This document shows positions 17,445 through 54,956 of a DNA stretch of 64,000 nt, piece by piece; positions within the stretch are counted from its first letter, which is position 1, and each line of letters starts with the position of its first letter. Below the pieces are notes generated by a model. That model made no database searches, was not told the DNA's origin, and saw only the letters and a program-made list of their open reading frames with translations. The DNA comes from Paramoeba atlantica. Taxonomy: Eukaryota > Protista > Discosea. The DNA lies in assembly GCA_977017575.1 (NCBI GenBank), contig CDRNVI010000187.1, positions 49,704 to 113,703 on the forward strand. The letters run 5' to 3'. The position numbers were made by a program, and so were the translations under genes.

Positions 17445-18400
17445 ATTCAAAATAAAAGAATCATCAATGGTTGCTCAGAGAAACTCTGAAAGAGAGAGAC
17501 AACAGATCGAGGGAGTTCCCTACAACCTACACAACAGGTTTCATTCATTTTTTTCATTCATTTTTTTCATTCAATTCTTTTTTAAAATTTTTATATCTTT
17601 ATTAAATATTATTTATTACAGGATTATCTTGGGGGGTTGAGGCTGTCTCTGGGGCTGTCGCTGGTCATATCAATTCTCTTGAAAAACAAGTTCTGAACGA
17701 ATTTACTCAAAAACCTTCTCAGCCCTCTCTTTTTCACAGCAGCGATCGAAAATGACCGACTTTCGGGAAGGGATGTCCAAATTGTGGGGGTTGGTCTAAT
17801 AATAGAACTCAGAAATGCCCTTCTTGCCAAACCAAATTACCAAAAGAGCGATCAGCAAAGAAGCTTACTGGAAAAACTTTAAGACTGGCAAAAAATCTAA
17901 ACTACGAGTGATTTTCAGCTTTGTGGATCAGAATCAAAAAAAGATCTCCTGATGATTGATTGATGTGAATTTGATTGGAACCCAAAATGCATTGAATGAT
18001 ATTCCTTGCAACTCAACAACCACTCGCAACCCTTCATCTTCTGCTGCTGCTGTGCTGCCAAGTCTAAGCATGGACCCAATGGACGAGAATCCTTCCAGCA
18101 AAGAAAGTGTCAAGCGGATCCTCGAGCAGATTTTGAAGGATATTCCTCTGGGTCCTCATTCTTTTTTGCCAATTTGCACCATCTCATGGTCCCATTGAAG
18201 TTTCTTTTCAAATTTCAAAAAGAAGAAGAGAAATTTCAAAATATTCTTCCAATCCTTGGCTCAGGGCATGAGGAATTGAACATATGTTGAAAGTGTTCAA
18301 CTCCCTTGTTTGGCCTCTGTGGGGTAAGACAGTTTTTTGCCTCTATCTCTTCATTCATTCATTCATTCTTTCTTCTCTCCTCAGGTAAAGACTTTGACAG
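17445..18400 (+). pseudogene. Fragmented ORF of unknown, possibly transposon-derived, family
   Basis: Protein-like segments in shifting frames (GLSWGVEAVSGAVAGHINSLEKQVLNEF; CPNCGGWSNNRTQKCPSC; ENPSSKESVKRILEQI; ILGSGHEELN) with stops and GT-AG introns at ~17538-17622 and ~18324-18384. Confidence 0.4.
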
Positions 18401-18899
18401 AAATAAAAGGAGTGTTAATGATAAACACAAATTGTGTATGGAAATTAAATTATGATTTATTTACAAAACATAGTCACAGGTGTTACACAACAATATGTCA
18501 TTGGAGTCACACAAGGGAGTCACAGGCATGTCAGCAAATAGTGCCAAAGATGAGATTGTGAACTCACATGGGGAAATAATAACCCACAGAGAAATGGACT
18601 GAATTGAGGAACATGGAAAACAATAGAAGGGACCAGGAGGATAAGGAAGAGACTGAAATGAGGGCAAAAGGATAACATGGGAAAGATGCAGAAATGAGTG
18701 GATCATCATTGAACAAATAAGGAAGTGTTACAACTGGATTTTAACACACTCCACAATGATTGATCACCATGAATCATCAGCAAAAAAAAATTAACTCAAT
18801 CAACAATCAAACTTCTTAGCCATTTAAACCTCCCACTTGACTTGAATGATTTGGTTAGAATATCTGCAATGTTGTAGTTTGTTTTGATGTAATCAATGT

Positions 18900-19390
18900 G
18901 AGCATGACCAGAGTGGAAAAATTCCAGAATTCAATGGCAGCAAATATCAATGTAGTGTAAATGAGAGTTCTCAGGATCATTCTTCTTGACCAAGGCAATC
19001 ACAGGTTGTGAGTCAGTGAAAACAGTGGGAACAAGAGGATAGTTAAAACTAAGAGTATTCAACTTATTCACAAGATTGATAATCCACATCAGCTTTTTCA
19101 TTTCATCACTCAACACAATATATTCAACCTCTGCAGAGCTTGTTGCAGTGCACTTCTGTTTGTTGGAGGAGAAAACCACCAGAGTTCCACTCAAGAAAAC
19201 AACACAGCCAGAAGCAGACTTGTGATTCAATTGAATATTTTTGAAACTTGAGTCCACCATTAAGGTAAAGGAGGAGTCATTGTCTTGATTAACTGTGATA
19301 CCAAGGTTGAAAGTGCTCATCAAATATCAAACCAGATGCTTGATGGCTCCCCAGTGCTCAATGTGAGGATCTTTTTGAAATTGAGACAAA
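18900..19390 (-). mobile_element. Degenerate Ty1/Copia LTR retrotransposon fragment (RT C-terminus and RNase H)
   Basis: KDPHIEHWGAIKHLV*YLMST...MVDSSF...KSASGCVVFLSG...SNKQKCTATSSAEVEY...VFTDSQ...HYIDICCH follows the Copia RNase H consensus. Confidence 0.85.
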
Positions 19391-19392
19391 AG

Positions 19393-19635
19393 GGTTGGTG
19401 CTTGTAGTTTAGTCATAAATTCAACTATATCCAACCCCAGGGGGGTGAGTTCAAATCCCAGTTTTTCGATATTATAGAAAATTTTTCTGGTGCTGTAGAG
19501 TGATTTGATTGGAGTGAAGAGCTCTTGAAGAAATGTGAAAATCAAAACAAGTTACATCTCAGCCCTGTCTGCTAAAAAGTTGAGAATAAATTCCCTTGGA
19601 AAAAGCTTTGAATTATTCTCCCTTCTGATGTGCAT
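19393..19635 (-). repeat. 243-bp dispersed repeat, hypermutated copy (partner at 28907-29149, inverted)
   Basis: Gapless manual alignment to 28907-29149 with 19 differences. Confidence 0.93.
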
Positions 19636-19939
19636 AGTTGAGTCCTCTACAGAATAGTATAGAAATAGAGACAAAAACAGAGAATAAGAACAAAGAACAA
19701 AAAAAGAACAAGCTTGGTTCAATGTCTTTTATTAAATGTGTTCCAAAAGCCAAAAAGAACAAAAAAAGTTTACACTTTTTTGCCCACAAATGGGTCCAAA
19801 GAACAAAACCTCTTTTGTACAAAAAAGAACAATAAATAATTTACAATTATTCACAATTAGAAAACACATACAAAACAGTTCAGTGTTTCTGCTCACCAAT
19901 AAAATGATAAAGTCAACAAAACCAACTATGACAATCCAA

Positions 19940-21795
19940 CACCCCCTGCAAGTGCACTTGCTCACAATTCACAACACAATAAAAACAAAACAAAACGAAA
20001 AAAATAAAACAACCAACACAACAAACATCACAACAGAAATAGTTCCTCATTTCTTCTTTACACACCATGTTGATTTTCTCTACTTTACATTGTATTCTCA
20101 AATCACATCATTTGCCAAAAAATCACTTGCAGGTTGCCAAGATGTCTCATCATAATATTTCCATTTGACAAGGTACTCCTTTTTGCCATCTTTGCCCTGA
20201 TCATTCAAAATTTTCTCAAATTCATAGATATCAAATAAATTCATTTCTCCTGGAATCACTTTCAATTGTGCAATAGAAACTTCTGCTTCAAGAACTCTCC
20301 CATCAATACATTCCAGTGAATAACCTTTTGTCTCATTGTTATATTTAGCAATATGAAAAGGGCCTTCCTAGCATTGCTACCATTTTATAGTTTTTTTATC
20401 CACTTTTTTCATAACTGAAGTGCCAATTGCCAGAGGTTTAGGTCACAAAGATCTTTTTTTCTGTCTCATTTCATTCACATCATCACAGCCTTTCTTACCT
20501 GCTTCTTTGGATAATTTCACAAGTGCTGGATAAACTGAATAGACCATCTTCTGATTTCTTTCTAACAATTTTTCAAGAGTTGCAACTTCCAATTCCAACC
20601 CCTTATATTTTGCTGCTTGGTTCCTCTCTTTCACAAACATCACTACAAAGGGAGTAAACTTATGTCTCAAAATATAGCAATTATTCAATGACATTTGAAT
20701 AACTGGCAAAAATTTCACCCAATTTGTTATATCTCCTTCCAGCAATTTTACAATCAAATTCAAAACTTCTCTCACATATCTCTCAACTGCACCATTTTGA
20801 GCAGAGTAATATTTCATCACTTTTCTTGATTTTGCAGTTGAAGCATTACGAAAAGCCTCCATAACTTTATTGAAAAACGATGGATTTTAATCACTTTGAA
20901 TCTCCTTAGGGACACTAAAATTCACAAAAACAGATAGCAAAGCTTCTACAACTGATTCCACTTCCTTGAAAATTAATTTATACAGTATCACAAAATGACT
21001 TGCAATATCTATTACAATAAGAACAATTGTATAGCCCTCATTCAACTCAAGCAACCCACAAATAAAATCCATACCAATTATATCCATAAACAACACTGAA
21101 GTAACTGGGGTAATCAGATGAAATCCAATTCTCCCATGATTGTATTTCAAACATACCATACAACTTCAACAGACTGTAATTACCATCCTTCTCATTGATG
21201 GTTAATAGTAGCTTGCATGAAATAGTTTCCAAACTATTTCTGAAATATCAATATAACTTTTTTCATGCTTTTCTTTTACCAAAAGCAGTTTCTCTTCTTC
21301 CTCTAGTTCTTTTTTACCAAGTACATTCCCAATAAACTCTTTAAGATATCTTTTAGTTTCTTCAACAGACTCATTCTCACACTCAAGTGCAGCAACATTA
21401 CAAGCATTAATTGTTGGTTCAGTAGAATCATTTGTAACTAAGTATTTTTCTTGATATAATCAAGAGAAATAGTCTGGTAAAACATTATGGATCCCTTTTT
21501 AATAAACAATATAGAAGTTGTAATTCAACAAAAAATCCAACCAATCCAAAATTATAAACTTTGTACTTGAATTCAAATACACAAGTGCCTTATGATCTGT
21601 CTTCACTCTAAACTTTTGCCCAAAAACATATGAATGAAACTTCTTAATCACAAAAATAATTGCCAAAAGTTCCCTCTTCAGTACAAGATAATTTTGTTGC
21701 CCTGCTTGAAGAGTTTTCAATGCAAATATAATATAATTGTCAAGTGGCGGGGTTTGGCAGAAGAAGATTGCTGAGAAAAGAAAAGAAAGGTGCAA
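19940..21795 (-). mobile_element. Degenerate Ty3/Gypsy chromovirus fragment (RNase H, integrase, chromodomain, putative PPT)
   Basis: RNase H QQNYLVLKRELLAII...KTDHKAL; integrase GMDFICGL...IQSD*...QNGAVER; chromodomain YEFEKILND...KEYLVKWKYYDETSWQP (~20120-20240); a GCAGGGGG purine tract followed by TGTTGG at ~19940. Confidence 0.88.
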
Positions 21796-22269
21796 ACTTC
21801 ATTCCATGGCAAGAGCCAGGAACGTGAAAAACAAAGTTTCTTACACATTTATTTATGAACAAGTTTCAAGCACATATTTGTTAATGTGACACCAAGTGCA
21901 AAAACAAAGAAACACACACAAATAAAAGCACACATAAGAGACACAAAGACACAACAAGTTTAAGGAAGGGAACAACAGATGATCAGGCTGAAAGATCAGA
22001 ATATGAAGAATAAACTATGCAATCAAATTAGGTCTGAAATAGAGCAAAGGTATTTTTGAAGGCACAATTCAATGATTGATCAATATCTCAGTGTGTAGTT
22101 GTCAGATTCAGATGGAACTAGCACCATTCAAAAGAGGAAGATGAGGCGCTTCAGGATAGTACATCTTGTGATCATAGAATTCACAAATAATGTTCTTCAT
22201 TAAGTCAAACATTCTTCAAACCAAGAATACTGATATTCTAACACTTCTTTTCATCATGAAGTTAATTCA

Positions 22270-23950
22270 TAGAACAACAGAGATGAATAAAGTTATTTCA
22301 ATGAAGTGTAAACACATTGAGTCCAAGAGGTTTTGTAAAAATATCAGCAAAGTTATCTTTAGTGGGCACATAATCCAATTCAATCAAGCCATCTTGCAAT
22401 GCTTTTCTTGTGTAAAGATCAAAGGCTTCAATTTGCTTAGTTCTTTGGTTTACACAAGGAATCTTTGCAATAGCCATTGCAGGTTCAGAATCAGATTGGA
22501 GCAAGAAAGGTTTTTTGTACAGGATGCACAACTCAGAGAGAATGTTATTAACAAATTTCAATTCACAGGATGCTTCAGCAAGGGCATGGTATTCAGATTC
22601 ACAACTGAACCAACAAATTTAAGGAGATTTCTTGGAACACTAGGAAATGGGGGAACCATTTGCAAAAATAGCAAAACCATAAGATGAGGATCTGTCTTCT
22701 GTAACATCTTGATGGCTTGAGTCAGCTTGGGCAGAAATCACAAGTTTTTTAGTCTTAGATTTGGATTTAAGAAACACCAATTCATAATCAGGATATTTGA
22801 CAAGATAACCTAGAATTTGCAAAGCAGCTTTGTTATGATCTTCAGTGTGGATATTCAAGAAGCAAAAGCATTGGAAAACAGCATATGAAATATCAAGGCA
22901 AGTTTTCATCAATCAAATTAAAGAACCAACAAGACTTGCATAGGAAAAATCAATAGAAGGTTCATCAAACTTAGGCATAAGCAAAACTTTACTCACAGCA
23001 GGAGTATCACTTTTTCTTATTTTGTGGCAGTCAAAACTCTTCAATAAATTGTTGAAAAAGGTACACTGATTGAGAGAAATTTTTTTGTGATTTTGTTTCA
23101 CACCACAACCAAGAAACCAAGAGCATTTTCTGCTAGGCTTCCACTTGAATCTTTCAATCAATTTGGAGTAAATCTCTTCACAGAGCTTTGAACAAGTACA
23201 AACATCCAAATTATCATCAACAACAGTTGGAAATAAACAGAAGTTTTCATCAGATTTAATACAAATGTAGAAATTGGAGTCAGCAGTCAGACAATAGAAT
23301 TGCAACTTTTCAATAAGAAATTTTTGAAAAGTCAGATTCCAACATTGTTCAACAATTGGCACACCATAGAGAGCTTTGTTCAATTAACAGAGATATTTAG
23401 GATATTCAGGATCTTTGAAACCTTCAGATTGAGTGACATAATAAACAATATCACCATCAAGAATGTTAGCTTGAATATAGGCACTTGGGACATCTTCAGA
23501 ATTTACATCAAGGTCAAACATAGCAACAATAGCAAATGTTAAATTGAGAAATTCAATGGTTGTAGTTCCAGCATAATTATCTTCTTGATTAAAATTGGGA
23601 TTTTTCACAAAATTATATTTTACATAAGAACTGTTTGCACAAAATTGAGCTTTGAACTTAGATATTACACCATTTTCAGTTTTAATTCAAAATTGCCACA
23701 GATCTTGTATAATAATGTGTTTTTTTCCATCTTTAAGGAACTTCAGGGGAGGCACCAATTTCCAAGTTTTATTTTCAATATAAACATTATATTTTCTTTT
23801 GCAGGCTTATTTCCATTCTTCTTTTTCATTTGAACAAGCAGCTTGCTTGTAGGATTGAGGGGTAACTTTGTCATTAACAATTTGATCAGTATAGAAGGCA
23901 TAGTTAAGAAAATTAAGATTTTTGTAACCATGGTCAGGTTCACCAAACAT
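22270..23950 (-). mobile_element. Second degenerate Ty1/Copia fragment (RT and RNase H)
   Basis: DVPSAYIQA...LC*LNKALYG...PTVVDDNL...FLG...YASLVGSLI*LMKTCLDISYAV...ADSSH...SDSEPA...DNFADIFTKPL. Confidence 0.9.
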
Positions 23951-25924
23951 ATTCCAAGGTATTTTTAGAGCATTGAACACTTTTCTAATGGTGCTATGTT
24001 GGTAGTTAGGGTCTTGGAAGTGAGCAGAATGTCTTACTTCTTCAGCTGCATCATCAGATTCATTTGGTTCAGAGATGTTAATTTCATCATCAGGTTAAGG
24101 TTAAGTAATAAAATTAAAATCAACTTTAAAATCAATTTCAGAGTTGTATGTAAAGGAAGAGTAAGGAGATGCAGATTGATTTGCAGGGGCATAAGAGTCA
24201 GAATCATGATTATTTGATGAATAAATGAACATTTTATAATTATCAAGGTCAATCAGCAATTCAGATTCATTTTCATTAGCAGAATCATTTTCAGTTCCCT
24301 ATACATTGCAAAAAACTAATGAATTTTTTCGAAAGATTTACGAATCGAATTGATTAAGGTGATGATTCTATCCAAAAGAGACGAAAAACATCGAAGCATA
24401 AGGTGTGCTAAAAAAGAAACCTTTTGTTTTTCTTTGATTTTCTCAATTCTTTCTTTTGATTGTGTGTGGAAAAGTGAAATAATTGATCTGGTGGTGTTGT
24501 TTTTAATAGTTTGTGAATAAAGAAAAAAAAAAAGAATAACAAACTAAAACATTTACTTGAAATATGGAATAAAAAAGTTCATTGGTAAATCAAACAATCT
24601 ATCATGTATCTTTCCAAACCTTTCAACTCTTCTTTTCTTTCAATTTCTTTCTTTTCTCTTTTTGTTTTTCTGTTTTTTTCTCACCCGCCACTTTTTTTTC
24701 TGAAAAAGAAAAAAAAAATCCAATTCCCAATCAAATGTTGTCACATCATCCATTTTCTTTTTCTTTTTTTGGTTTTTTTTTAGTTTTTTTTTGATTTTAG
24801 GGTTTCGAACAGTTTTTTTTTTTCTTTTTTGTTTGTGAGAAAGAAAGAAAAAAAAAAAAAGAAAGAGAAAGAGAAAGATTCAACAAAAAAGAGAAAAAAA
24901 CAAAAAAAAACAAAGAAAAAGGATTGTATGACCAAAATTGATTGAAAAAATCCAAATACAAACCAAAAATAAGATTAAAAAAGAAAAAAAGAAAAAGAAT
25001 TGAATTTGTATTGGTCCTATCTTGATGGAAGCTTGAACAACTAAGAAAAAACAAGAACATTTGAATTCTTTTTCACCTCCTTGCCAAATTTCAAGAAAAA
25101 AAATCACATCCAAAATAAAAATCAGTTTTTCAGCAAAAAAGTTTTTCTTTTTTGTTTTTTGTTTTTGTTTGATTTTTGTGTTTGGTTTTTGTTTTTTGAA
25201 AGATGAAAAAAATAGACTTTTAGAAATCAAGAGATTTTTAGTTTTTTCAATGTATCACTTTTATATTAAGAAAGAGAAATGAAAAACCAATCTATTTTTC
25301 TCAAAGTGAGAAAGATAAGAGAATTCACAAGGTTTATCCAGTGATTCAATTCTTTGAGGTTTTCTTTCTTTTCTTTTTTCCTCTTCTTTTTCTTGTTTCT
25401 TTTTTTCTTTTTCTCTTTTTCTTTTTTGTTTCTTTTTTCTTCTTTTTCTTTCATCTCTTTTTTTTTTTTACTTTTTTTCACACAAAATTGTTTTTTTTTT
25501 TCTTTTTTCTTTTTTCTTTTTCTCTTTTTTCTTTTTCTCTTTTTTCTTTTTCTCTTTTTTCTTTTTCTCTTTTTCTTTTTCTTTTTTGAAAAGATTTAGA
25601 AAAATAAAAAACTAATTCTTTTTATTCTCAGAATGAACAATAAAAAAAATCAAAAGGAATTCATTTTCTTTTGTGTTGAGTGGGAATAGGATTTCTTTTT
25701 TTTCAATGGTTTTTTGATTTCTTTTTTGATTTATTTTTTTCTTTTTCTCTCATTTTCTTTTTTTTTTTTTCTTTTTATTTTTTTTTATTTCTTTTTTATT
25801 TCAGGGTTTTGAAAGTTTAAAAATATAAAAGTTTGTTTTTTGTTGTTTCTTTTGAGTTTTAATCTTTTTGTTGATATTCGGAATTTTTTTTGTTTTATTT
25901 TTTTTTATTTTAATTGTTTTTTTT

Positions 25925-27965
25925 CTTCAGAAAGTGTTTTTTATCATTGAAAATAACATCATCTTATTCCCTGTGATTTACTGTATCCAAAGAATCCTAT
26001 TTTTCTCTCAGATAAAGCACAATGTGATGTGATGGGTTAGAGGTTCAGTTTCTTTTTTCCAACATTTTTTTAAACAATATTTAAATAATTAAAGTTTTAA
26101 TGTTTTTTCCTTCAGAAACTGTTCTTTATCATTGAAAATTATATCATCTTATTCCTTGTGATTTACTGTATCCAAAGAAATCTATTTTTCTCTCAAATAA
26201 AACACAATGATGTGATGTGAGGAGTTCAGTTTTTTTTTTCTGATATTTTTCTAAACAATATTTAAATAATTTTGTTTTATTGTTTTTTCCTTCAGAAACT
26301 GTTCTTTATCATTGAAAATAATATCATCTTATTCCTTGTGATTTACTGTATCCAAAGAAGCCTATTTTTCTCAGATAAAGCACAATGATGTGATATGAGG
26401 GGTTCAGTTTCTTTTTTCGGGTATTTTTTTAAATAATAACTAATTACTTTTTTTTATTGTTTTTTCCTTCAGAAACTATTCTTTATTATTGAAAATGATA
26501 TCATCTTATTCTTTGTGATTTACTGTATTCAAAGAAGTCTATTTTTCTCAGATAAAGCACAATGATGTGATGTGAGGGGTTCAGTTTCTTTTTTTCAATA
26601 TTTTTTTAAACAATAACTAATTACTTTTTTTTATTGTTTTTTCCTTTAGAAACTGTTCTTTATCATTGAAAATCACATTGTCTTATTCTCTGTGATTTAT
26701 TGTATCCAAAGAATCCTATTTTTCTCAAATAAAGCACAATGATGTGATGTGAGGGGTTTAGTTTCTTTTTTTTAATATTTTTTAAAATAGTAACTAATTA
26801 CTTTTTTTTATTGTTTTTTTCTTTAGAGAGTGTTTTTTATCATTGAAAATTATATCATCTTATTCCTTGTGATTTACTGTATCCAAAGAATCCTATTTTT
26901 CTCTCAGATAAAGCACTTGATGTGATGTGAGGGGTTTAGTTTCTTTTTTTTCAATATTTTTTTAAACAATAACTAATTACTTTTTTTTATTGTTTTTTCC
27001 TTCAGAAACTGTTCTTTATCATTGAAAATCACATTGTCTTATTCCCTGTGATTTATTCTCTCCAAAGAAGCCTATTTTTCTCAAATAAAGTACAATGATG
27101 TAATGTGAGGGGTTTAGTTTCTTTTTTTCAGTATTTTTTTAAACAATAACTAATTACTTTTTTTTATTGTTTTTTTCTTCAGAGAGTGTTTTTTATCATT
27201 GAAAATTACATCATCTTATTCCTTGTGATTTACTGTATCCAAAGAATCCTATTTTTTTCTCAGATAAAACACAATGTGATGTGATGGGTTAGGGGTTTAA
27301 TTTCTTTTTTCTGATATTTTTTTAAATAATATTTAAATAATTAAAGTTTTAATGTTTTTTTCTTTCAGAGAGTGTTCTTTATCATTGAAAATAACATTGT
27401 CTTATTCCTTATGATTTACTGTATCCAAAGAAGTTTATTTTTCTCTCAGATAAGCACCTGATGTGATGTGAGGAGTTCAATTTCTTTTTTTCCGACATTT
27501 TTTTAAACAATAACTAATTACTTTTTTTTATTGTTTTTTCCTTCAAAGAATGTTCTTTATCATTGAAAATTACATCGTCTTATTTCTTGTGATTTACTCT
27601 CTCCAAAGAAGTCTATTTTTCTCAGATAAAACACAATGATGTGATGGGTTAGAGGTTCAGTTTCTTTTTTCTGGTATTTTTTTAAACAGTAATTAATTAC
27701 TTTTTTTTATTGTTTTTTTCTTCAGAGAGTGTTTTTTATCATTGAAAATTACATCGTCTTATTCCTTGTGATTTATTGTATTCAAAGAATCCTATTTTTC
27801 TCTCAGATAAAGCACAATGTGATGTAATGGGTTAGGGATTTAGTTTTTTTTTTCTGATATTTTTTTAAATAATATTTAAATAACTTTTTATTTTAATGTT
27901 TTTTCTTTCAGAAAATATTCTTTATCCATTGAAAAATTGTATTGTCTTATTTCCTGTGATTTACT
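25925..27965. repeat. Tandem satellite, about 12 units of ~177-186 bp
   Basis: Unit consensus CTTCAGAAA(C/G)TGTTCTTTATCATTGAAAAT...TGTGATTTACTGTATCCAAAGAA...CAGATAAAGCACAATGATGTGATG... recurs at ~25925, 26110, 26290, 26467, 26643, 26821, 27000, 27177, 27363, 27541, 27720 and 27905. Confidence 0.95.
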
Positions 27966-28039
27966 CTTGCTTTGAAACCACCAAGAAATAAGAGCACTCT
28001 TATTTTTTAATGGACTGAGATTTTTTTGTGCTTTGGTTT

Positions 28040-28070
<31 letters not shown>

Positions 28071-28175
28071 CTTTTATTTTTTCTCTTCTTTTTCTTTTTT
28101 TTTCTCTCTTTTATTCTTTTTTGTCTCTTGCTCCTCCAATCCTTTTTTTTTTTCTCTTTTCCCTCTTTCTTTCTT

Positions 28176-28231
<56 letters not shown>

Positions 28232-28906
28232 TCTTTTTTCTTTTTGCTAATTTTCCTCTTTTGCCTCTTTCTCTCTTACCAAAGTATTGTTGGAGGTTTA
28301 GGAGTGATATTGTGGACCACATTTAATTAGGTTTACAAGCTTTTCTTCCTTTCCTTTTATTGCTTTTCCTTTTTTCCTTCCCTTCCTCCCTCTCTCTGTG
28401 TTCAATTTGCTTTCCTTTCTTTTATTTCATCTTTGACACATCCTGTCCGTATGCAGCCAAAATCTACTCTCCTCTTTTCTGATTTATTTTTTTTCTTTTA
28501 CTTTCTCTTTTGTTTTTTGGAGTTCAAAATAATAAAAAAGAAAGGTTAAAGGTTTGTTTTGTTTTTTTGAAAAATCAAAAAAATATTAATAAAAAAATTA
28601 ATTTTTGATTTGTTTTATTTTTTGGTTTTTTTGAAAAAAAATGAAAAACACAAACACACAACACAATGATCACAAATGAAAAACAAACTAATATCACCTT
28701 AACAACAAAGAAAAAAACCATTAACTCTTTTTTTTTTTTTTTTGAGGCAGACTTTATTCAATTAGTAGTTCTTAATCTAAGCCATTTGAATTACATTAAA
28801 TTATGTTTGTTTTTAACCTCTAACAAGAGGTGAAGTTTTAAACTTCAGCTTAGTTCAGTCGGTCTTTATGCTGAACTTTAGAACTTCTGCAAGTTCAGGC
28901 TGGAGG

Positions 28907-29149
28907 ATGCACATCAGAAGGGAGAATAATCCAAAGCTCCTTCCAAGGGAATTTATCCTCAACTTTTTAGCAGACAGGGCTGAGATGTAACCTGTTCCGA
29001 TTTTCACACTTCTTCAAGAGCTCCTCACTCCAATCAAATCACTCTACAGCACCAGAAAAATTTTCCATAATATCGAAAAACTGAAATTTGAACTCGCCCC
29101 CCCGGGGTTGGACATAGTCGAATTTACGACTAAACTACGGGCACCAACC
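28907..29149 (+). repeat. 243-bp dispersed repeat, less-mutated copy (partner at 19393-19635)
   Basis: Retains 7 CpGs, of which only 1 survives in the partner copy; open frame TLLQELLTPIKSLYSTRKIFHNIEKLKFELAPPGLDIVEFTTKLRAPT. Confidence 0.93.
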
Positions 29150-29849
29150 AAAACCATTAACCCTTTCTTTTATCAACACCAACTATTGCACAAGTCTCCG
29201 GACTTATGGAGAGTTGACCTCCTCCCTTCAGCAGTGGTATGGTGCCCCTCTGTCTGTGTAAAGATGGCAAGAAGATGAAAAATCTGGAAATTGAAACACT
29301 AGGGTTTAGAGTTGTTATTTGGTTGTTGTTGGTTGTGTTGTTGCCTCTTTATGCTTGGTGAATCAGCAAACACTTTTATTTTTTCTTGGAAGAGGAGGGG
29401 ATGTCTCTTTAAAGTTTTTAGGGTTTAGACTTCAATTTTCAGTGTGCCAGTAAACTACTTCTTAAATCTTTTTTTTTTGTTTTAAGAACTCTGCCAACAT
29501 AGCGGTAGAGTTCTCTTTTGTTTTTTTTCTTCTCTAAACCCACAAATATTCTAACAAAAAAAAAATAAAAAAATTCTCAAAAATTCTTAAAAAAATTTTC
29601 AAAAAATTCTCAAAAAAAAACAAAAAAAAATTCTCACAAAAAAAAAAATAAAAAAAAGCAAAGTTCCTACCCCCTCCCATTTTTCAGACACAAAAATCTC
29701 TCTTTTGAAGACACTTTTTTTTGTTTTTTTTTGAGAATTTTTTGTTTTTTTTTTTGTTTTTTTTTGTTTTTTTTTTTATTTTTTTTTTTTTTTTTTGAAT
29801 TCTCCACAAAGAGAAATATTGAACAAATTTTTTGTGTTAGTTTCTTTCC

Positions 29850-30977
29850 ATGTCCCATAAAGTCCTTTTTCCTTCTCTTTGTCAAAAAGACTGCCGAACA
29901 TACTGGTGTTTACAAAAAAGAGAAGAAAGAGAAGCAAAAAAGCGAAAAGTACAAACGACAAATGAGAACAATTTTTACTTAACAGCATTTCAATGCAACC
30001 CCCCTTCCTCTTCTTTACCACCTTTGAGAAAGGAGGAGGAGAAGTTTACGATATTACCACCTTTTTCAGTTTCTATTCCAAAGCCTTTCAAAAATTATTA
30101 TTTTTCCTCCTCCATTCTCAGCAACAGCAGCAGAAGCAGCCTTTTAAACCCTCTCAACAAACCTAGAAAAGAACACAAAATTCTTCCCTTTTTTTCACTT
30201 CATGAATATTATATCTTTACGAATACAAACCTTCCTCAACCACTTCTAACATTTCCACCAGTTCTTTCCCAATATTTGAGCATTTTCTTTTTCTTTTTGA
30301 AAAATTCTTGTCATTTTTCACAAAAACAAACTTCAAAAAATTTTGATTTTAAAGGAACAATTATGATTGGGTATACTGTTAATGCAATTGAGGCAACAGG
30401 TTTTTTCTTTAATTTTTTTTTCTTTAATTTTTTATCTTTTTTTTCTTTGTTTTTTTTGTTTATCTTTTTTCTCTAACCTTATTTTTGTTTCTTTTTTGTC
30501 TGTTCGTCTTATACCCTAACCCACTCCCTTTAATTGTTTTCCTCTAATTTTGGATTAGGTTTTGAAAAACTCTACAATTTTGTCTGCCATTTTGGAGTTG
30601 CTAATAATCCATTTGAACGAAAAATTCCCCAATGGAAAAAACAATTATGGCTTCAAGGGAAATACCTATATTCTCTTCTCGATGATTGCTTCGCTTCTGG
30701 GAAATTTGTAATCTATGTTTCTTTAATGACATCAAATGACCAATCAGTCAAATGGTACTCTAATGAATGCGATATTACATTTCAAATTGTTATTTTTTTA
30801 GGAACGTTTGTTGGTGAGAGTTTTTTTGAATTTAAAGACCCAACAGAAGTATATACAATTCGAATTCCAATTATTTCAGGAACAATAATTGTTTTTGACA
30901 GACATTTGCGACATTGAAAAATTGTAATGGAAAGTTTTCATGGGGAACAATACACTGTTATTTTTTTTAAAAATTAG
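29850..30977 (+). pseudogene. Two-exon gene remnant with a C-terminal 2OG-Fe(II) dioxygenase-like domain
   Basis: ORF 29850-30399 joins ORF 30559-30977 through a phase-1 GT-AG intron with a CCCTAAC branch site. C-terminus KWYSNECDITFQIVIFLGTFVG...IIVFDRHLRH*KIV...GEQYTVIFF resembles HxD...LGxFxGG...FDG..H...GxRYxVxF; one in-frame TGA at 30915. Confidence 0.55.
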
Positions 30978-31046
30978 GGTTTAGGCTGTAGTTTTTTTTG
31001 TTTATTTGTTTAAATTTGTTTTTTGAAGCAAATAAAAAAATTTAAA

Positions 31047-31090
<44 letters not shown>

Positions 31091-34000
31091 AATTTATTTT
31101 AATTGTAAACAAAGAAGAAAAAGAAAGATAAAACATTTTGAATGTCTTTAAAGAGGAGCACTTAGAGACTTTACTTTTTAAAGTACAGAGTTTTGCTGAA
31201 TAGATCTCATGTTTCTCACCATGCTATCAATGAGTACAACAGAAAGTCATCACTATGTATATTATAAGAAAGTTCAATAAAAATCTTGATCTAATATCAT
31301 ACCTTTCTGCAAAACCTCAGAAGCAATGCACTTCAGAAAGCTTGTTACATTTGGTGAAACTGTACTGTCTAATGAAGTTAACATAAAAAGAAAGAAAACT
31401 TCTTTTTTTAAAGAGTTGAACAATTTAATTTCTTTAAAGATCCTCACTTCTTCAGGGGTATTGTTATCTCTTCTTGCATTCAACATTTTGATGTGTAGGT
31501 GTTTTGGTAGATATTCATTCAGCTTTCAGATTCTCATTATGTGTGAAATTGCAAGTAAATTTCTGGGGTTGCACATATTTGATATGCCTATTGCCATACC
31601 TTGAAACCTAGATATTGCATTTCTGCCTTGAACTGAAGTGACTATAGCATCTAAACACAAGTGTCTCCCACCTTACCAATGTTTGAAAGTTAAATTTGAC
31701 TTCTTGTTGCAATAACCAATAGAAGGAAAATGGCCATCTAGAACCACATCAAATTGTACAAGTTTGGAGATTTGGAGAAGCTGTTTTACAAAATGATGAT
31801 GCCTATCATTCATACCTTGGTTGTATTTTACACAGTCAGAGAGGTGGAGGGAACTTGACATAAGTTTGGAGCAGGCCTTGCAAGTAACAGTGCTTTGACT
31901 TGAGAGAGACAAAAGAGTGGGATCTGTAATATCAAAACAGCACCAATAAGCAAAGCAATACTCCTCAGCATTCAAAAAATCTGATCTATTGTAGTGAGTA
32001 TCTTCTCCCTTAGAATTTGGATAGACTGTTATCCACACATGAGAAATTGAGCCAGCTTCATTCTCTCAGAGCACAGCTTGCAGTAGAATAAAGTTATTAT
32101 TTTGAATTATCTTTTTTCTGTTTTCTTGAAACTGATAGCTAGTGAGCTTCTTTTGATACTTGAGAGCTGCTGAGTAGTTGGATTCTAGGGGTAGATTGGT
32201 GAGCCTAGTGAGGAGTTGGTAAAAGGATAGGTTTTTTGTTTCTGCAATCTTCCACTCAATGTTAAGTTTGGCTTTAAACTTAACATATACATTGGAAATT
32301 GCTTGTTTCTCAAGGAAATCATTTTTTTTTTTTAATGAAAGAGATTTTTATTCAAAATAGATGGTTGTAAGAGAAAGAAATAGAAAGAAAAAAAGAGAGA
32401 AAAAAAGAAAAAGAAAAAGAAAAAAAGAGAAGAAAAGAGAGAAAAGAAAAAGAAAAAGAGAATAGAAGAGAGAAAAAAAAAGAAAAAAAAAGAAAAAAAA
32501 TTAAATTGTTACCTTCTTTGGAATGAAGAGGAGTATTGTGTATTGTGCACAGAATTATTGAAATAAAAACTGAATCTTTTTGAAGATTAAAAAGATATTT
32601 CACAAATCCTAGGAATAAAATGAAAAAGAGAATTTAAGTGAAAAAAAAAGAAAAAGAAAGAAAGAAAAGAAAGGGAGAAAGAGAGAGTATTGGAGAGAAA
32701 AAGGAGAAGAAAAGAAAAAAAAAGAGAAAAAAAGAGAAAGAAAAAGAAAAAAAGAAAAAAGAAAAAAAAGAAAAGAAAGAAAAACCAATAATCAATTAAT
32801 GTGAAGAGAACACACACATACACAGAGAGAGAGAGAGAGAAAAAGAGCATCAAATTTAAGGTGAGTAGGGAAGGATTAATGATTCACTTAAATAAAAAGT
32901 ATTTAAAAAAAAAAAGAAAAAAGAAAAAAAAAAAAAAAGAAGAGAAAGAAAAAAAAAACCTTTCTATATTATTGTCTTTTTTGTGTTCAAGAAAGTTGAA
33001 AAAGAAAAAACTCACAAAAATACCATATTATCATATTCAATGAAAGTAAATTAAAAAGGAAAAAAAAAAAAAAAGAAAAGAAAAGAAGAAAAGAAAAAAA
33101 GAAGAAAAAAGAAGAAAAAAGAAGAAAGAAGAAAGAGAAAAAGAGAAAAAAGAAAGAGAAAGAGAGAAAGAGAAAGATGAGAGAAAGAAAAGACCTTCAT
33201 AAATATTGCATTTCAGAACTATAAGCACATTCATACTTTTTGCACTAAAAAAAAATTAATTTCCAAATTCAAATCTAAGAAAGAGAAAGAGAGAAAAAGA
33301 AGAAAGAAAGAAAAAGAGAAGAGAGAGAGAAAGAGAGAAAGAGAGAGAAAAAAAAAAGAGAAAAGAAAAAGAAAAAAAAAAGAGAGAAGGAGGAAAAGAG
33401 AAGAGAGAAAGAAAGAGAGAGGAAGAAGAAAGAGAGAAAGAAAGAGAAAGTTAAAAAAAACCTTGTTGTAATACTATGATGATATCTTTTTCCTCTGATT
33501 TTATTAATCAGAATCTATTTTATTTTTTTATTATTGACTGAAAGAAAAAGAGAATAAGAAAAGAAAAAAGAAGAGAAGAGAAAAGAGAGAAGAAAAGAAA
33601 AGAAAAGAGAAGAGAGAGAGAAAAAAAAGAGCAAGAAAGAGAGAAGAGAATAAAAAAAGAACAGAAAAAGAGAAGAGAGAAAAGAACTATTGCTTTTTTA
33701 ACTTGAAAAGACCAATTCTTATGCTTCAAAACAGAAGATAAGGGTTTAGGGTGGTTCATACACATTCTAAAAGAAAATTATTATTATTATTTATTATTTT
33801 AAAGAGAAAAGAAAGAGAGGAGAGAGAGGGGAGAGAGGGGAGAGGGGAGAGGGAGAGAGGGAGAGAGGAGAAAGAGGAGGAAGAAGAGAGAAAGAGGAGA
33901 GGAAGAAGAGAAAGAAAGAGAAAAAAAAAGAACTAAGAGAGTCACTTCTCCACCAAAAACAATTCCCACCTTAGTTAACATTCTCTTTGTTGCATATACA

Positions 34001-36823
34001 TCTGGAGAAAAAGAAAAGAGAGAGAAGAGATTAGGGGAGAGGAGAGAAAGGGAAAAAAAGAGAAAAGAGGATGAGAAAAATAATTCCTTGAGAAGAAAGA
34101 AAAGAGAAGAGAGAGAGAGAAGAGAAGAGAAGAGAAGAGAAGAGAGAGATAAGAAGAAAAAGAGAAGAGAAATAGAGAGAACAAAGAAGAGAAGAGAAGA
34201 GAAGAGGAAAGGAGAGACTTTGTAAACATTAATTAATTTTAATTCATTTGAGATTTGAACAACCCATATTTCCTCTGTACCATATAAGTCTAATAAAAAT
34301 GAAAGAGAAGAGAAAAAAGAGAAGAGAGAAAAAAGAAGAAAAAGAAAGAAAAGAGAAAATTTATTAATTTAAACATACACACTCAAGAAAATAAAAAATC
34401 AAGAGAGAGAAAGGAAGAGAAAAGAGAAAAAGAAAGAAGAAAGAAAAAGAAGAAAGAAGAAAGAAGAAAGAGAAAGAAGAAAAAAAAAGAAAAAAGAAAA
34501 AAGAGAAAGAGAGAGAGAAAGAGAAAAGACCTTCATAAATATTGCATTTCAGAATCATAAACACATTCATACTTCTTGCAAGAGACACCAAAAAAGATTG
34601 ATTTCCAAATTCAAATCTGAGAAAGAGAGAGGGAGAGAGAGAGAGAAAGAAGAATGAAAAAAAAAGAGAAGAAAGAGAGAAAGGGAGAAAGAGAGAGAAA
34701 GAAAAAGAAGAGAAAGAAGAAAAGAGAAAAGAGAGAAAAGAGAGAAGAGAGAAGAAGAAAAGAACTAAGATTATTTTTGGTAGAGAAAGAAAAAGAGAAA
34801 GAAAGAGAAAGAGAGAAGAGAGAGAGAAAAAAGAAAAAACCAAAAAAAAAGAGAACAAAAATAGAGTCCAATTTAAAAGTAAGGAGTAATGAATCAAACA
34901 AAAATTTAAAAAAAAAGAAATTGAAAGAAGAGAAAATAAAAAAAAATGAGAAAAAACCAAAGAAAACATTTTTCTTTTTGTTCAGTGGGACAAAAAATAT
35001 TAAAAAACAAAAATAAAAATAAAAAAAAAGGAAAGGAGAGGAGAAGAGAGGAGAGGAGAGGAGAGGAGAGGAGAGAAGAGGAGAGGAGAGGAGAGGAGAG
35101 GAGAGAAGAAAAAAAAAACAGAGAAAGAAAAGAGAGAAAAAAAACCTTTTAATTTTTCAGAAATATATTTTTCTCAGTTTTATGTGCATGAAAGAAAGAA
35201 AGAGAGAGAGAAAAAGAAAAATAAAAATAGAAAAAGAAAAAAAAGAAAAGAAAAAAACCTTTTCTCTATGGAGAGAAGAAAATTAAATTATTGAATCATT
35301 TCATCAGTTTCATTTTCTATTTTATCAAATAAAATATTTTAAAGAATGAAGAGTGGAAAGAGAAGAGAAGAGAAGAGAAAAGAAAGAGAGAGAGAGAGAG
35401 AGAAGAGAGAATGAAAAAAGAGAAAAGAACAAAGAATAAAGAAAGAAAATGAAAAGAAAAAAAAAAAGAAAAAGAAAAGAGAAAAGAGAAAAGAAGGGAA
35501 AGAGAGGGAAAGAGAAAAGAAAAGAGGAAAGAAGTGAGAAGACAAGAGAGAAAGAAGAGAAGAAAAGAGAGAAGAGAAGGAGAGAAGGAGAGAAGAGAAG
35601 AGAAGAGAAGAGAAAAAAAAGAGAAAAGAAAACCATTGCTTTTTTAACTTGAAAAGACCAATCCTTATGCTCCAAAACATAAGATAAGGGTTTTGAGTGG
35701 TTCATACACATTCTATAAGAAAATTATTATTATTTATTTATTATTTTAGAAAAAGAAGAGAGAGAAGAAAGAGGAAGAAGAGGAGAGAAAGAGGAGAAAG
35801 AAAGAGAAGAGGGGAAAAGAAAAAAAGAACCAAAAGAGTTATTTCTTAAAAAAAAACAATCCTCACCTCAGTTAACACTCCTTTTTGTTGCATACACATC
35901 TAAAGAAAAAAAAAAGAGAGAGAAAAGATTAGGGGGGAGAGGAGAGAAAGAGAAAAAAAGAGAAAAGAGGATGAAAAAAATAATTCCTTGAAGAGAATAA
36001 GAAGAGAAAAGAGAGAGAGAAGAGAGAGAGAGAAGAGAAGAGAAGAGAAAAGAAGAAAAAGAGAGGAGAAAGGGAGAAAGGAGAGGAGAGGAGAAGAGAA
36101 GGGAAGAGAAGAGAAGAGAAATCCTAGAAACATAACCCTTTTGATATTACCAGTAACATTTATTGATAAATAAGAACTTCTCTCATATGTGTATATATGC
36201 TTTCTAAGAAAGGAAGAAGAAGAAAAAGAGAAAAAAAGAAGAGAAAAGAAGAAAAAGGATATTTTAGTCAATCAAAAGGGAAGAAAAACAGAGAAAAAAA
36301 AAGAAAAAGAAAAAGAAAAAGAGGAGAAACTTTGGAAACAATTAATTTTAATTCATTTGAAATTTGAACCACCCAAAAATATTCCTCTGTACCAAAGAAG
36401 GTTAATTAATAAGAATGAAAAAGAATAGAGAGAAAAGAGAAAAGAGAAAAGAGAAGAAAAAGAAAGAGAAGAGAAAACTTATTCATTTAAACACACACAC
36501 ACTCAAGGAAATATATGTATTTTAGAGAGAAAGAGAGAGAGAGAGGAAAGAAAAAAAATTGAGAAAAACCTCAAAGGAGAGGAGGAGTGATGAAAAAAAG
36601 GAGGTGAACACTCTTGAATGTTCAATTAGAGAGGAAATTTCTTTTTTTTGTGTTTTCCTGTGTATTGAGAAGAAAGAAAATGAGAGGAGAAAGCAGAGAA
36701 AAGAAAAGAAAAAGAAAAGAGAGAGGAAGAAAGAGAAACCAGAAACAAGAACAGAAAATACATATCAATCAGTACAAAAAGAACTTTTAATTTTTGTTTG
36801 TTCTGTATTTTAAAAAGAAAGAA
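30974..36823. repeat. Subtelomeric segmental duplication, copy 1 (partner 48477-54591, same orientation)
   Basis: Shared start ATTAGGGTTTAGGCTGTAGTTTTTTTTGTTTATTTG and collinear unique islands through ...GAACTTTTAATTTTTGTTTGTTCT(G/A)TATTTT(A/G)AAAAGAAAGAA. Confidence 0.93.
31052..32300 (-). mobile_element. 3' part of a degenerate CRE-like (restriction-like endonuclease clade) non-LTR retrotransposon, copy 1
   Basis: Minus-strand frame ...LLQAVL*ENEAGSISHVWITVYP...FLNAEEYCFAYWCCFD...CKACSKLMSSSLHLSDC...NDRHHHFVKQL...LCLDAIVTSV...FLKCIASE: CCHC knuckle, RH and D-x-x-V pattern of RLE elements. AATAAA followed by a 30-nt poly(A) (T run 31052-31081). No RT domain found. Confidence 0.65.
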
Positions 36824-37898
36824 AATGAGAAAGAACAAAGAAAGAAGAAAAGAGGAGAGAAATTTGAGGGAGAGAAAACAGGGGAGAAAATAGAGAGAAA
36901 GAGAGAGAGAGAAACCAGAGAAAGAGGGAGGAGAGAAAGCAAAAAAGAAATTGGAGGAGAAATCAACAAGAAGAGAGCTCATTCAATGATGTTATTTGTT
37001 CTGTATTTTGAAAGAAAAAATAAGAAAAAAAAAAAGAGAAAAAAGAGAGAGAGAGAGAGAGGAAAAAAGAAAAAAATAATTCAAAAAATTGAACCTAAAA
37101 AAGAGTCATTAAACATCATTGTATTTTTCTTTCCACTTTACTGAAACAAAAAATATAATTTAATAAGAGAGAGAGGATGAGACAAGAAAAAAAAGAAAGG
37201 GAAAAGAAAGAGAGAAAAACCAGAAGAGAGGGTTTCAAGGGGGGAGAGGAGGAAAACAAACAACAAAAAATAAAAATCAGTGAAGAAATCAACAGCAAAG
37301 AAAACTCAGTGAGGAAATCAAAAACTAAATCAGCAGCAGCAGAAAATGAAACTAAAATAATAAAAATTGAAAGAAAAGGAAGGAAAAAGAAGTGTGGTTA
37401 GAAAAGAAAAACCAAAACTGAAAAATTTATTTTTCTTTTTATAAACTAAACTAACAAACAAACAACCAAATTGAAAAACTTGAAAACTTGAAAGAGAGAA
37501 AAGAGAAAGAAAAAGAGAGAAATAAAATAAAACCCTTTTCTGTGAATTAATTCATTTTAGAATTTGGTAAGAGAAGTTTTAAAACAAAAAAAGTGTTTTA
37601 AAGATAATTTTCTCCATTATGTAAAATTCATCTGAAAATATCAAAAGAAAAATGAGAACTCAGTGAGGGAGAGGAAAGAAAAAAATACAAAAAATGAAGT
37701 TTTAGGTTTGTTCTTTGTGAATTGTATTTTTTTTTGAGAAAAAAGAAAGGAAAAATAAAGAAAAAGAGAGAAAGAAAGAAAAAAAAAAACTAAAATAACA
37801 AAAATTAAAAGAGAAATTCCAAGAGAAATCAACACAAGAAAAATTGGTAGAATACAATTATTGTTCTGTGTTTTGTGTTTTGAGAAAAATGAAAAAAA

Positions 37899-37939
<41 letters not shown>

Positions 37940-40400
37940 ACTAAAAAATTGAGGGAGAAACTAAAGAAAGAAATCAAAAAAAAAGAAACTTGAAAAAAGA
38001 AAGAAGGTTGCAAAGTGGTGAAAAAGAGGACATGAAAAAAAATCACATTGTAGTGTTTTGACTGATGAAAAAAAGAACACACCCCCCCACACATGGTGTT
38101 GTGTGCATGCAACTTTGAACTTATTCTTTGTTCTGAGAAAAAAAAAAAGAAAATGAGAATAAAATAATAAAAAAAAAAGAGAAAAAAAAAAGAAAGAAAA
38201 GAAAGAAAGATAAACACACACACACCAGAGAGAGAAGAATCAGTAGAAGAATTGGCAGAAAAACATTGCAGAGGAATTGACAGAGAAAAAAGATGAACAA
38301 CTTGGCAGGGGAATTGGTGGAGAAATATTACAGAGAAACTGGTAAACAAATTGATAGAGGAACCAGCAGAGAAATAATTGGCAGAGAGATTGGGATTGAT
38401 GAAGGAATCAAAAAATCTTTTTATTTTTATTCAGTGGAACAAAATATCAAAAAAAGAGAAAGAGAAAGAGAAAGAGAAAGAGAAAGAGAAAAAGAAAGAG
38501 AAAGAGAAAAGAAAGAGAGAGAGAGAAAGAAACCAGAGAGAGGGAGCAAGCAAAGAAATATTGAAGAGGAATTCCAAAAGAAATCAACAGGAAAATATTG
38601 TGGAGAAATTAACAAGGGAAATTGGAAATAAATCAGAAGAGAGAGAAGAGAAGAGAGAAGTGAGGAAATATTTGTAACAAAAAAAAATAAAAAGAAAGAA
38701 AGAGAAAACCTTTTTTGAAATAATAAAAGAATTTGAGGTGACAGATCAATAGAACAAATAGTAAGTCCAAAAAAAAAAAGCGATTCATAGATACAGTAGT
38801 GTTATGTGTATGTGCAAAATATTGAATCTTTGTTCTTTGCTTTATGTTCTGAAAAAGAGAGAGAAGAGAAAGGGGAAAGGAAAAAAGAGAGAAAAGAAAA
38901 AGAGAATGGAAAGAGAGAAAAGAAGAAAAAAAAAAAAGAAAGGGAAAGGAAAGAATGAAAAATTAATGAAAGAATAAAAGTGAAAGAAAGATCAAGGATG
39001 GGATTGGGGGGGGGAGAGAAAAAAGAAAGAAATAAACAACACTCACTGTTGGAGTGGCAGTGAAAAAAAAAGGAATAAATAAAAAAGAACTAAAAAAAAA
39101 TCATGTTTTGTTGTTTTGGTAGCTAAAAAAAAATGTGATGTGTGAAAAGAAAAAAGAAAAGGAAAAAATAAAGAAAAAGAGGAGAGAAAGAAAACCAGAA
39201 AGAAAGCAAAGAAAGATTGCAGAGGAATTAACAGAAGAATCAATGGAGGAACCAGCAGAGAAAGAAACTCAATCTGGAGTAAAGAAAAAAGGTGAACAAA
39301 TCAGTGGAGAAATTGGCAGAGAAATATTGCAGAGAAATTGGTGAACAAATTGGCAGAGGAACCAGCAGAGAAATAATTGGCAGAGGGATTGGTGAAGAAA
39401 TTAGAAAATCTTTTTATTTCTGTTCAGTGGAACAAAATATCAGAGAAAGAGAAAGAAAAAGAGAAAGAGAGAGGGAGCAAGCAAAGAAATATTAAGAAAC
39501 AATCAGTCAAGATTTTAGTGAACAAATTGGCAAGGGAATTGATGGAGAAATATTGCAGAGAAATTAATAAAAGAAAGAAAGGAAAAAAGACAACCTCTTT
39601 AATAAAGAAAAAAAGAAAGAAAGGGAACCTGAAAAAAGGAAGAAAAAAACAAAAAATGAGTAACACACACTGTTGGAGTGGCAGTGAAAAAAAAAGGAAT
39701 AAATAAAAAAAAACTAAAAAAAATTGTGTTTTGTTGTTTTGGTGATTAAAAAAAAATGTGATGTGTGAAAAGAAAAGAAAAGGAAAAAATAAAGAGAGAG
39801 AAAGAGAGAAAGAAACCAAAGAGGAAGCAGAGAGATATTGCAGAGGAACTGGCAGAGGAATTGGCAGGTATCAGCAAAGAAAGAAAATCAGATCTGGAAA
39901 TAGAGGAATTGGTGGAGAAATATTGCAGAGAAATTGGTGAACAAATTGGTAGAAACATCAGCAGAGAAAATGATAGAGAAATTGGTGAAGAATTACAGTA
40001 GAAATATAAGAGGAGAAATCAATGGGGTAGGAAGGAGGGAAATGGAGGAAAAACCAAGGAAAAAACAGAAGAGAAAAACAAAAAAGAAATATCAGAAGAG
40101 AAAAGAAAGAAAACCCCAGAAAAAGAAAGTACATTTGAGGTGGACACATGTTGAAGTTGATTTTTGTTCTGTAAATTTTGAGAAAAAAGAAAAGGAGAAA
40201 AAAGAAAAAAAAAAAAAGAAAAAAGGAAAAAAAAAAGAGAGAAAGAATAAGAGAGAGAAAGAAAGACCAAAGAAGGTAAGGAGAAATCAGTGGGAAAATA
40301 TCTAGTAGGAAAATCAGTTGAGAAACCAGCTGAGAAATTGGGAAAAAAATCAGTGTGGAGAAACCAAAAAAGAAAACTTGGATTAAAAATTGGAGGACCA
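32350..40400 (-). pseudogene. Decayed multi-exon gene remnants (exon-like islands in GA-rich intron-like DNA), internally duplicated
   Basis: Complex 90-150-bp islands bounded by AG and GT on the minus strand (e.g. a 96-nt phase 1-1 exon at ~32512-32607), repeated at 33190/34530 and 33680/35630. Confidence 0.5.
38230..40000. repeat. Degenerate tandem repeat with a ~625-bp period
   Basis: CACTGTTGGAGTGGCAGTGAAAAAAAA(A)GGAATAAATAAAAAA at ~39044 and ~39669; AATTGG(C/T)...AGAAATATTGCAGAGAAATTGGTGAACAAATTGG motifs at ~38300, ~39310 and ~39905. Confidence 0.8.
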
Positions 40401-48480: not shown

Positions 48481-48557
48481 GGTTTAGGCTGTAGTTTTTT
48501 TTGTTTATTTGTTTAAACTTGTTTTCTGAAGCAAATAAAAAAAAAAAATTTAAATTT

Positions 48558-48604
<47 letters not shown>

Positions 48605-54944: not shown

Positions 54945-54956
54945 TTTAGTGTTTAC

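Follow-up and report, generated by a model that had tools for sequence, protein, structure and literature searches.

The window examined here is a stretch of 64,000 nucleotides of DNA of the marine amoeba Paramoeba atlantica (contig CDRNVI010000187.1, positions 49,704 to 113,703), in which a 243-bp repeat occurs twice, near 19.4 kb and 28.9 kb, in copies that differ by transitions alone. A sequence-only reading had attributed this pattern to a repeat-directed cytosine-modifying system that acts beyond CpG and resembles the repeat-induced point mutation (RIP) of fungi. The repeat proved to represent the 5' portion of a 421-bp short interspersed element (SINE), whose copies erode in place through C>T and G>A changes, at CpG sites and elsewhere. 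One of the two copies lies in a nest of long terminal repeat (LTR) retrotransposons almost devoid of CpG, the other in a segment that retains CpGs:

28728..29149, minus strand: full-length young SINE copy, 421 bp; the poly-T run at 28728-28743 on the plus strand is its poly(A) tail
28714..28727, plus strand: left target-site duplication of this SINE, with a T at 28726
29150..29163, plus strand: right target-site duplication of this SINE
28400..30910, no strand: CpG-retaining segment with the young SINE; 24 CpGs, observed/expected 0.41
19393..19635, plus strand: older SINE copy, 5' 243 bp, sitting in a Copia-like RNase H remnant and truncated at the end of a Gypsy-like element
18124..24329, no strand: CpG desert over the LTR-retrotransposon nest that holds the 19.4-kb SINE; 7 CpGs, observed/expected 0.04

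A SINE family and its two copies in the window

SINEs of the tRNA type have A and B boxes, a poly(A) tail, target-site duplications (TSDs) and a high copy number. The family described here shares with them internal polymerase III boxes with tRNA-like spacing (in the master sequence, 13-23 for A and 57-66 for B), a poly(A) tail, TSDs of 13-18 bp (14-17 bp at 28.9 kb), many dispersed copies and an empty site. It differs in that neither ARAGORN nor Rfam called a tRNA cloverleaf in its head, and no match of its tail to a partner long interspersed element was found in the window and 118 kb of comparison sequence; judged by the box spacing, its parent was likely a tRNA. We rejected an LTR terminus or a coding fragment as readings of the 243 bp, which are the SINE head. 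Thirteen further copies lie in seven comparison loci (the 118 kb just mentioned), which gives 15 copies with the window pair; two short divergent matches (L002 3033-3106 and L006 995-1068) were excluded from the counts. All seven loci come from assembly ERZ24900291 and are treated as belonging to the same genome as the window, or a very close one, because the SINE and Copia elements are common to them and the window. A pattern search of metagenome contigs for the SINE gave no matches.

The 28.9-kb copy departs little from the master sequence, retains all eight CpGs still present in any family member and carries CC>TT in its B box at 29084-29085. Its empty site lies near 2160-2175 of locus L008, which is paralogous to window 26.5-31 kb but lacks the SINE. 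Position 28726 in the left TSD carries a C>T change found in neither the right TSD nor the empty site; therefore, this mutation occurred in place, after insertion. Relative to the family, the 19.4-kb copy has lost seven of eight CpGs and is changed at 10 of 89 non-CpG C/G sites.

When 28907-29149 is aligned without gaps to the reverse complement of 19393-19635 (243 columns), the two copies differ at 19 positions, by 19 transitions and no transversion, the same count as the sequence-only reading gave. Its other two counts also held on realignment, with C or G in the 28.9-kb copy at 17 of the 19 columns and the loss of six of seven CpGs (seven in the 28.9-kb copy, one in the 19.4-kb copy). Chance was rejected both for the transition purity (P = 5e-4, even assuming a transition fraction of 67%) and for the 17:2 direction (P = 7e-4). 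In the family alignment, six differences are CpG losses and ten are non-CpG C>T/G>A changes, all in the 19.4-kb copy; one, at 29066, is a subfamily-level G/A variant, and the two seemingly reverse differences result from the CC>TT at 29084-29085, where the 28.9-kb copy has mutated in its B box. Polarised in this way, all 19 are C>T or G>A. The earlier statement that most changes lie outside CpG is true by count, but per site CpG is lost far faster (6/7 dinucleotides, compared with ~11/91 non-CpG sites). The 17:2 asymmetry is a matter of age and zone, not of one-sided mutation of a paired duplication, because the young copy sits where CpG erosion is weak and is compared with an older one from a nest where it is strong.

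One of the seven TCG sites in the pair has changed. The sole CpG remaining in the 19.4-kb copy, at window position 19467 (SINE position 75), stands in a TCGA context and is also the most frequent survivor in the family (5 of 13 copies); a methylase may possibly disfavour this context, the numbers being small.

Cytosine-directed decay across repeat families

A comparison of transition/transversion and context spectra across repeat families, which the sequence-only reading had proposed as a check, revealed that C:G>T:A transitions dominate. One-way, cytosine-directed erosion at CpG and elsewhere, as that reading had suspected, is found in the 15 SINE copies, nine copies of a Copia reverse transcriptase (RT), LTR and TSD pairs, CRE-like elements and duplicated segments, with 10293 transitions and 837 transversions over the repeat comparisons, the pairs being non-independent. 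In the SINE copies, 109 of 129 CpGs are lost and 181 of 1736 non-CpG sites (10.4%) carry C>T or G>A, whereas A:T>G:C changes (3/2912, 0.1%) and transversions (7/4907, 0.14%) are rare; by maximum likelihood, the CpG rate is ~25 times the non-CpG rate. SINE loads are gradual, running continuously from 1.4% to 41%. Copies on one contig have similar non-CpG loads (31-41% in L006, 1.4-2.9% in L007; permutation P = 0.048), which may reflect either regional rate or regional age.

Copia elements show the same damage in coding sequence, as in one that lies in the nest:

21738..24298, minus strand: Copia-type RT/RNase H region with an RVT_2 match; 3' LTR at 21738-22243

This element has lost 46 of 46 CpGs, is changed at 17% of non-CpG C/G sites and contains eight stop codons, all derived from CAA, CGA or TGG. 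A search with its RT returned ENA proteins and nothing else. Among the nine Copia RT copies, 437 of 5355 non-CpG sites have changed and 39 of 41 stop codons derive from CGA, CAA or TGG; frameshifts are few, the elements being damaged mainly by C>T/G>A changes that include stop codons. The seeming A:T>G:C changes are mostly shared subfamily columns. Non-CpG changes accumulate neutrally, at equal synonymous and non-synonymous rates (0.081 and 0.082), and selection was accordingly rejected as the source of the spectrum.

Mismatches between paired TSDs, which are 14-17 bp long, are all C/T or G/A, and the two LTRs of one L005 Copia insertion differ by 15 transitions (11 at CpG, 4 elsewhere) and no transversion. 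Because the copies within TSD pairs and LTR pairs differ, the changes arise in place after insertion. They do so on both strands (sense C>T versus G>A: 98 versus 83 in the SINEs and 246 versus 191 in Copia), and TG and CA outcomes are balanced at the CpG columns of both families. Same-strand neighbours occur about as often as expected (227 versus 217 in Copia, 93 versus 88 in the SINEs; P ~0.2), and the copies differ in strand bias at a borderline level (P = 0.06). Outside CpG, the context rates in SINE and Copia copies are nearly flat (CA 0.07-0.09, CC 0.10-0.14, CT 0.08-0.09), with CpA the slowest or joint-slowest context and a mild preference for a 5' T (TpC 0.11-0.13 versus ApC/GpC 0.06-0.09); CpG is lost whatever the 5' base.

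Several other sources of such a spectrum were rejected. APOBEC-type editing during reverse transcription does not fit changes that arise in place on both strands and that also affect TSDs, LTR pairs and non-retroelement segments. Ultraviolet damage was rejected because tandem CC>TT changes, of which the pair has four, show no family-wide enrichment (13 against 10.6 expected, P = 0.25) and because ACA/GCA sites have average mutation rates. A sequencing artefact is incompatible with loads of up to 41% and with the CpG and zone specificity.

A 177-bp satellite (25908-27965, ~11.4 units, also present in L008) is less pure than the transposons, with 54 C>T/G>A changes, 15 reverse transitions and 25 transversions relative to its consensus.

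CpG and non-CpG decay are uncoupled

In the LTR nest the CpG observed/expected ratio is 0.04 and in two subtelomeric blocks it is 0.00; the gene zone has 0.53, with GpC at 0.64, and overall GC is 33%. The region is subtelomeric, because its host sequence ends in a TTTAGGG telomere array (54592-54949). The two blocks and the retrotransposon remnants within them are as follows:

30911..38780, no strand: CpG desert, subtelomeric repeat block; 0 CpGs versus 133 expected
48194..54590, no strand: CpG desert reaching the telomere; 0 CpGs versus 122 expected
31193..32330, minus strand: 3' region of a CRE-like (restriction-like endonuclease) non-LTR retrotransposon, CpG-free, assigned by motif inspection
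48760..49900, minus strand: second CRE-like copy, CpG-free

These two CRE-like copies differ by 121 transitions and 7 transversions. Together with a third remnant (L009 4400-5700) they show zinc knuckle and restriction-like endonuclease motifs, and they sit in duplicated subtelomeric blocks that start at a short telomere-like seed near 30975.

With one pairwise estimator, CpG sites decay 21 times faster than non-CpG sites in young SINEs within nests and 35 times faster in the L005 LTR pair, but only 4-5 times faster in CpG-retaining segments (window, L008 and L009). The CpG rate itself differs 4-7-fold between zones. Four nest SINE copies as young as the 28.9-kb copy have lost 22 of 31 CpGs, compared with 0 of 8 in the latter (P = 4e-4), and the intact CpGs of the 28.9-kb copy agree with the slow regime (P ~0.2-0.3) but not with the fast one (P < 0.005). 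Non-CpG C>T persists in both types of zone: judged against the paralogs in L008 and L009, CpG-retaining DNA carries about 4-7% per copy (5-7% for the segment at 28400-30910 and L008), with 79 non-CpG transitions and 6 transversions against the window, and 117 and 11 between L008 and L009. The CpG and non-CpG components are thus uncoupled. Sister CRE-bearing blocks carry 58 and 12 private C>T changes (P = 2e-8), an about 5-fold difference in load, from which we conclude that the decay rate depends on locus; with private transversions at only 3 versus 0, a general difference in rate is hard to tell apart from such locus dependence. The identity of the repeat, the empty-site proof of in-place mutation and the separation of the two components are new here.

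Two further remnants complete the nest, and a third element adjoins the young SINE:

18414..19392, minus strand: second Copia-like RT-end/RNase H remnant; 3' LTR at 18414-18743 with TGTTAA...TTAACA ends; by inspection, no Pfam match
19636..21735, minus strand: Gypsy-like remnant with an integrase-like and chromodomain region; LTR-like end at ~19636-19941
29850..30976, plus strand: decayed two-exon TET/JBP-like dioxygenase gene; Atlas feature match 0.94, Pfam not significant

The integrase piece of the Gypsy-like remnant has no Pfam match, and the homologous stretch of L006 has a weak Chromo match. The TET/JBP-like gene, like other spliced genes searched exon by exon, has an in-frame stop and has lost its 3' end at the junction with the CRE-bearing block; at its HxD ligand site the window copy reads YSN and the L009 copy HSD. 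It occurs in at least three copies (window 29850-30976, L008 2908-4050 and L009 1-520), each with its own C>T/G>A damage, in a segment that keeps many CpGs. The window copy lacks ~3.7 kb found in L009 ahead of the CRE-bearing block. Downstream of the gene in L008 (6439-9646), CpG-retaining DNA contains open reading frames (ORFs) of 367, 268 and 293 aa without a Pfam match. Such a gene next to the SINE would be compatible with a host that uses 5-methylcytosine (5mC).

Elsewhere in the window, 15480-16976 on the minus strand apparently forms a single exon and encodes a multi-membrane protein of 499 aa whose C terminus bears a PLAC8 domain. One length-limited search returned no relatives of it, and one with a TraB-like exon of the host likewise returned nothing; with that length filter, these blanks carry no weight. 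The telomere array is joined directly to Flavobacteriaceae-like DNA that runs to 64000 (PNPase, accD, aldolase, BamA-like and rRNA methylase-like ORFs); this bacterial DNA after 54949 is a contig join or misassembly and not host DNA.

A possible mechanism and its known relatives

We favour, with moderate confidence, the explanation that CpG methylation of repeat zones acts together with a weaker non-CG modification of cytosine, both followed by deamination. Repeats would then decay slowly and in place, at two speeds, probably during ordinary growth. In a first layer, dense CpG 5mC on retroelement nests and subtelomeric blocks would deaminate and strip most CpGs soon after a copy lands. In a second, a weaker and nearly context-free modification or destabilisation of the other cytosines, most likely non-CG 5mC, would turn the cytosine of CA, CC and CT into T on either strand throughout the residence of the copy, at up to 40% of sites. 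The layers would not be locked to each other, the first being weak and the second active near the 28.9-kb SINE.

CpG loss in silenced repeats is an established signature of 5mC deamination. In our data the loss is confined to repeat zones, the gene zone keeping its CpGs, and it proceeds as CpG>TpG/CpA on both strands after insertion. Young transposable elements carry CpG methylation (mCG) in Acanthamoeba, and 5mC in all contexts has been measured in Naegleria repeats (PMC12344493). The spectrum seen here coincides with neither organism's pattern: a CpG-only process of the Acanthamoeba type does not account for non-CpG C>T at 10.4% when A:T>G:C stands at 0.1%, and in place of the equal contexts of Naegleria we find CA, CC and CT similar and CpG 4-35 times faster.

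Several points weigh against this explanation. The mark is read from its mutational outcome, a methyltransferase gene did not come to light, and a literature search yielded no publication about DNMTs of Paramoeba. In the nearest relative measured, Acanthamoeba, non-CG methylation does not rise above background (PMC12344493), and methylation need not be mutagenic, as in Prasinoderma (PMC11884799). Moreover, non-CpG C>T and transversions stand in much the same ratio in every zone tested (22-73 per site, with overlapping intervals), which would also be expected from a zone-independent cause, and all the sequence compared is duplicated DNA.

That similar ratio also favours a somewhat unlikely alternative, in which ordinary deamination of 5mC in silenced repeats explains the CpG loss alone, the non-CpG excess coming from deamination of plain cytosine that escapes repair; uracil or G:T repair would then be weak, either genome-wide or in silent chromatin. 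The uncoupling of the two components and the slight context preference agree with it as well. In its genome-wide form it would imply an equilibrium GC of ~1%, far from the 14-34% of exon fourfold sites and the 34-41% of intergenic DNA, and it does not explain sister copies ~5-fold apart in load; the form restricted to chromatin is possible.

Unlikely, in our view, is a cytosine-mutating system outside RID, Dim2 and DNMT1-3-5, namely a non-canonical methyltransferase or deaminase that acts in all contexts and independently of CpG methylation. If it existed, a functional analogue of RIP would have arisen outside fungi.

We consider it quite improbable that an enzyme, either a Dim2-like mutator or a recruited DNA cytosine deaminase, actively mutates silenced DNA during growth. 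Known DNA deaminases have sharp sequence motifs, and no such motif appears here; nor are there strand-coordinated runs overall, and a gene of this kind did not turn up. The mild 5'-T preference and a weak surplus of neighbouring same-strand pairs among private Copia changes (21 versus 12.7 expected, P = 0.014) speak for such an enzyme, as does a spectrum of ~95% C>T like that of the Dim2 experiment (PMC8016269), but Dim2 targets CpA and leaves CpG alone, the reverse of what is seen here.

General AT drift, a single uniform bias visible in repeats because they are unselected, would suit an AT-rich genome of 33% GC. We regard it as very doubtful: it leaves unexplained the sharp CpG deserts adjoining CpG-normal gene DNA, the 4-7-fold zone difference in CpG rate and the 58:12 asymmetry of sister copies, and observed GC is far above the implied ~1% equilibrium, an indirect argument given that the compared DNA is all duplicated.

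RIP is burst-like and strand-coordinated. Canonical fungal RIP, that is, homology-triggered, premeiotic and RID-dependent bursts of C>T, would account for repeats altered almost purely by C>T/G>A, with stop codons and rare frameshifts, and yet it is scarcely credible here, as there is no CpA or TpCpG target, loads are continuous and follow the zone (again with sister copies 58:12 apart), strands are not coordinated, and TSDs of 14-17 bp and a 243-bp fragment are mutated, far under the ~400-bp threshold (PMC3318451), while reports of RID are confined to fungi (PMC12344493). The RIP indices likewise fail: RIP calls for a high TpA/ApT and a low (CpA+TpG)/(ApC+GpT), and the LTR nest has 0.61 and 1.67, near the 0.52 and 1.48 of the gene zone. 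Of the sequence-only reading, then, the cytosine-directed erosion at CpG and beyond stands and the RIP label falls: the process is RIP-like in outcome, in that elements are killed by C>T, but it is not RIP, and the evidence points to DNA methylation or a related process. That the non-CpG part is peculiar to repeats, and that a dedicated defence rather than passive deamination drives the decay, are conjectures.

Non-CpG mutational destruction of repeats is documented mainly in fungi, and the nearest measured amoeba has CpG-only methylation; our search, which left most subscription journals outside its reach, found no publication on C>T decay of repeats in Paramoeba or other amoebozoans. A culturable protist with near-pure C>T and separable components makes it directly testable whether such decay follows from methylation as a side effect or is a defence driven by an enzyme, and by which one. 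The SINE family, short, star-like and flanked by TSDs, offers a dosimeter with which to map the process genome-wide.

Among known systems, Acanthamoeba castellanii has DNMT1 and DNMT3 and silences transposons through mCG (PMC12344493). The process here is likewise amoebozoan, CpG-directed and aimed at retroelements, with genes largely spared; it differs in that non-CpG cytosines decay too, in the SINE family at ~100 times the per-site rate of A:T>G:C. Naegleria gruberi, with DNMT1 orthologues and TET, marks four contexts equally and sparsely (PMC12344493). Shared with this non-fungal protist are the effect on repeats at CA, CC and CT as well as CG and a TET-like sequence, decayed in our case; unlike there, CpG is 4-35 times faster, and the process is known from its mutational outcome, that of Naegleria from the mark. 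In Zymoseptoria tritici, Dim2-dependent mitotic mutation is >95% C>T, almost only at CpA, with CpG spared (PMC8016269); the dominance of C>T, the focus on repeats and the gradual accumulation are common to both, whereas the fungal enzyme, the CpA target and the sparing of CpG set it apart. RIP targets CpA in ascomycetes such as Neurospora, and a RIP-like process targets TpCpG in Pucciniomycotina (PMC3318451). Like RIP, the process described here is a transition-only erosion that destroys transposon reading frames; unlike RIP, its rate is set by genomic zone and not by a partner copy, and it reaches even very short duplications.

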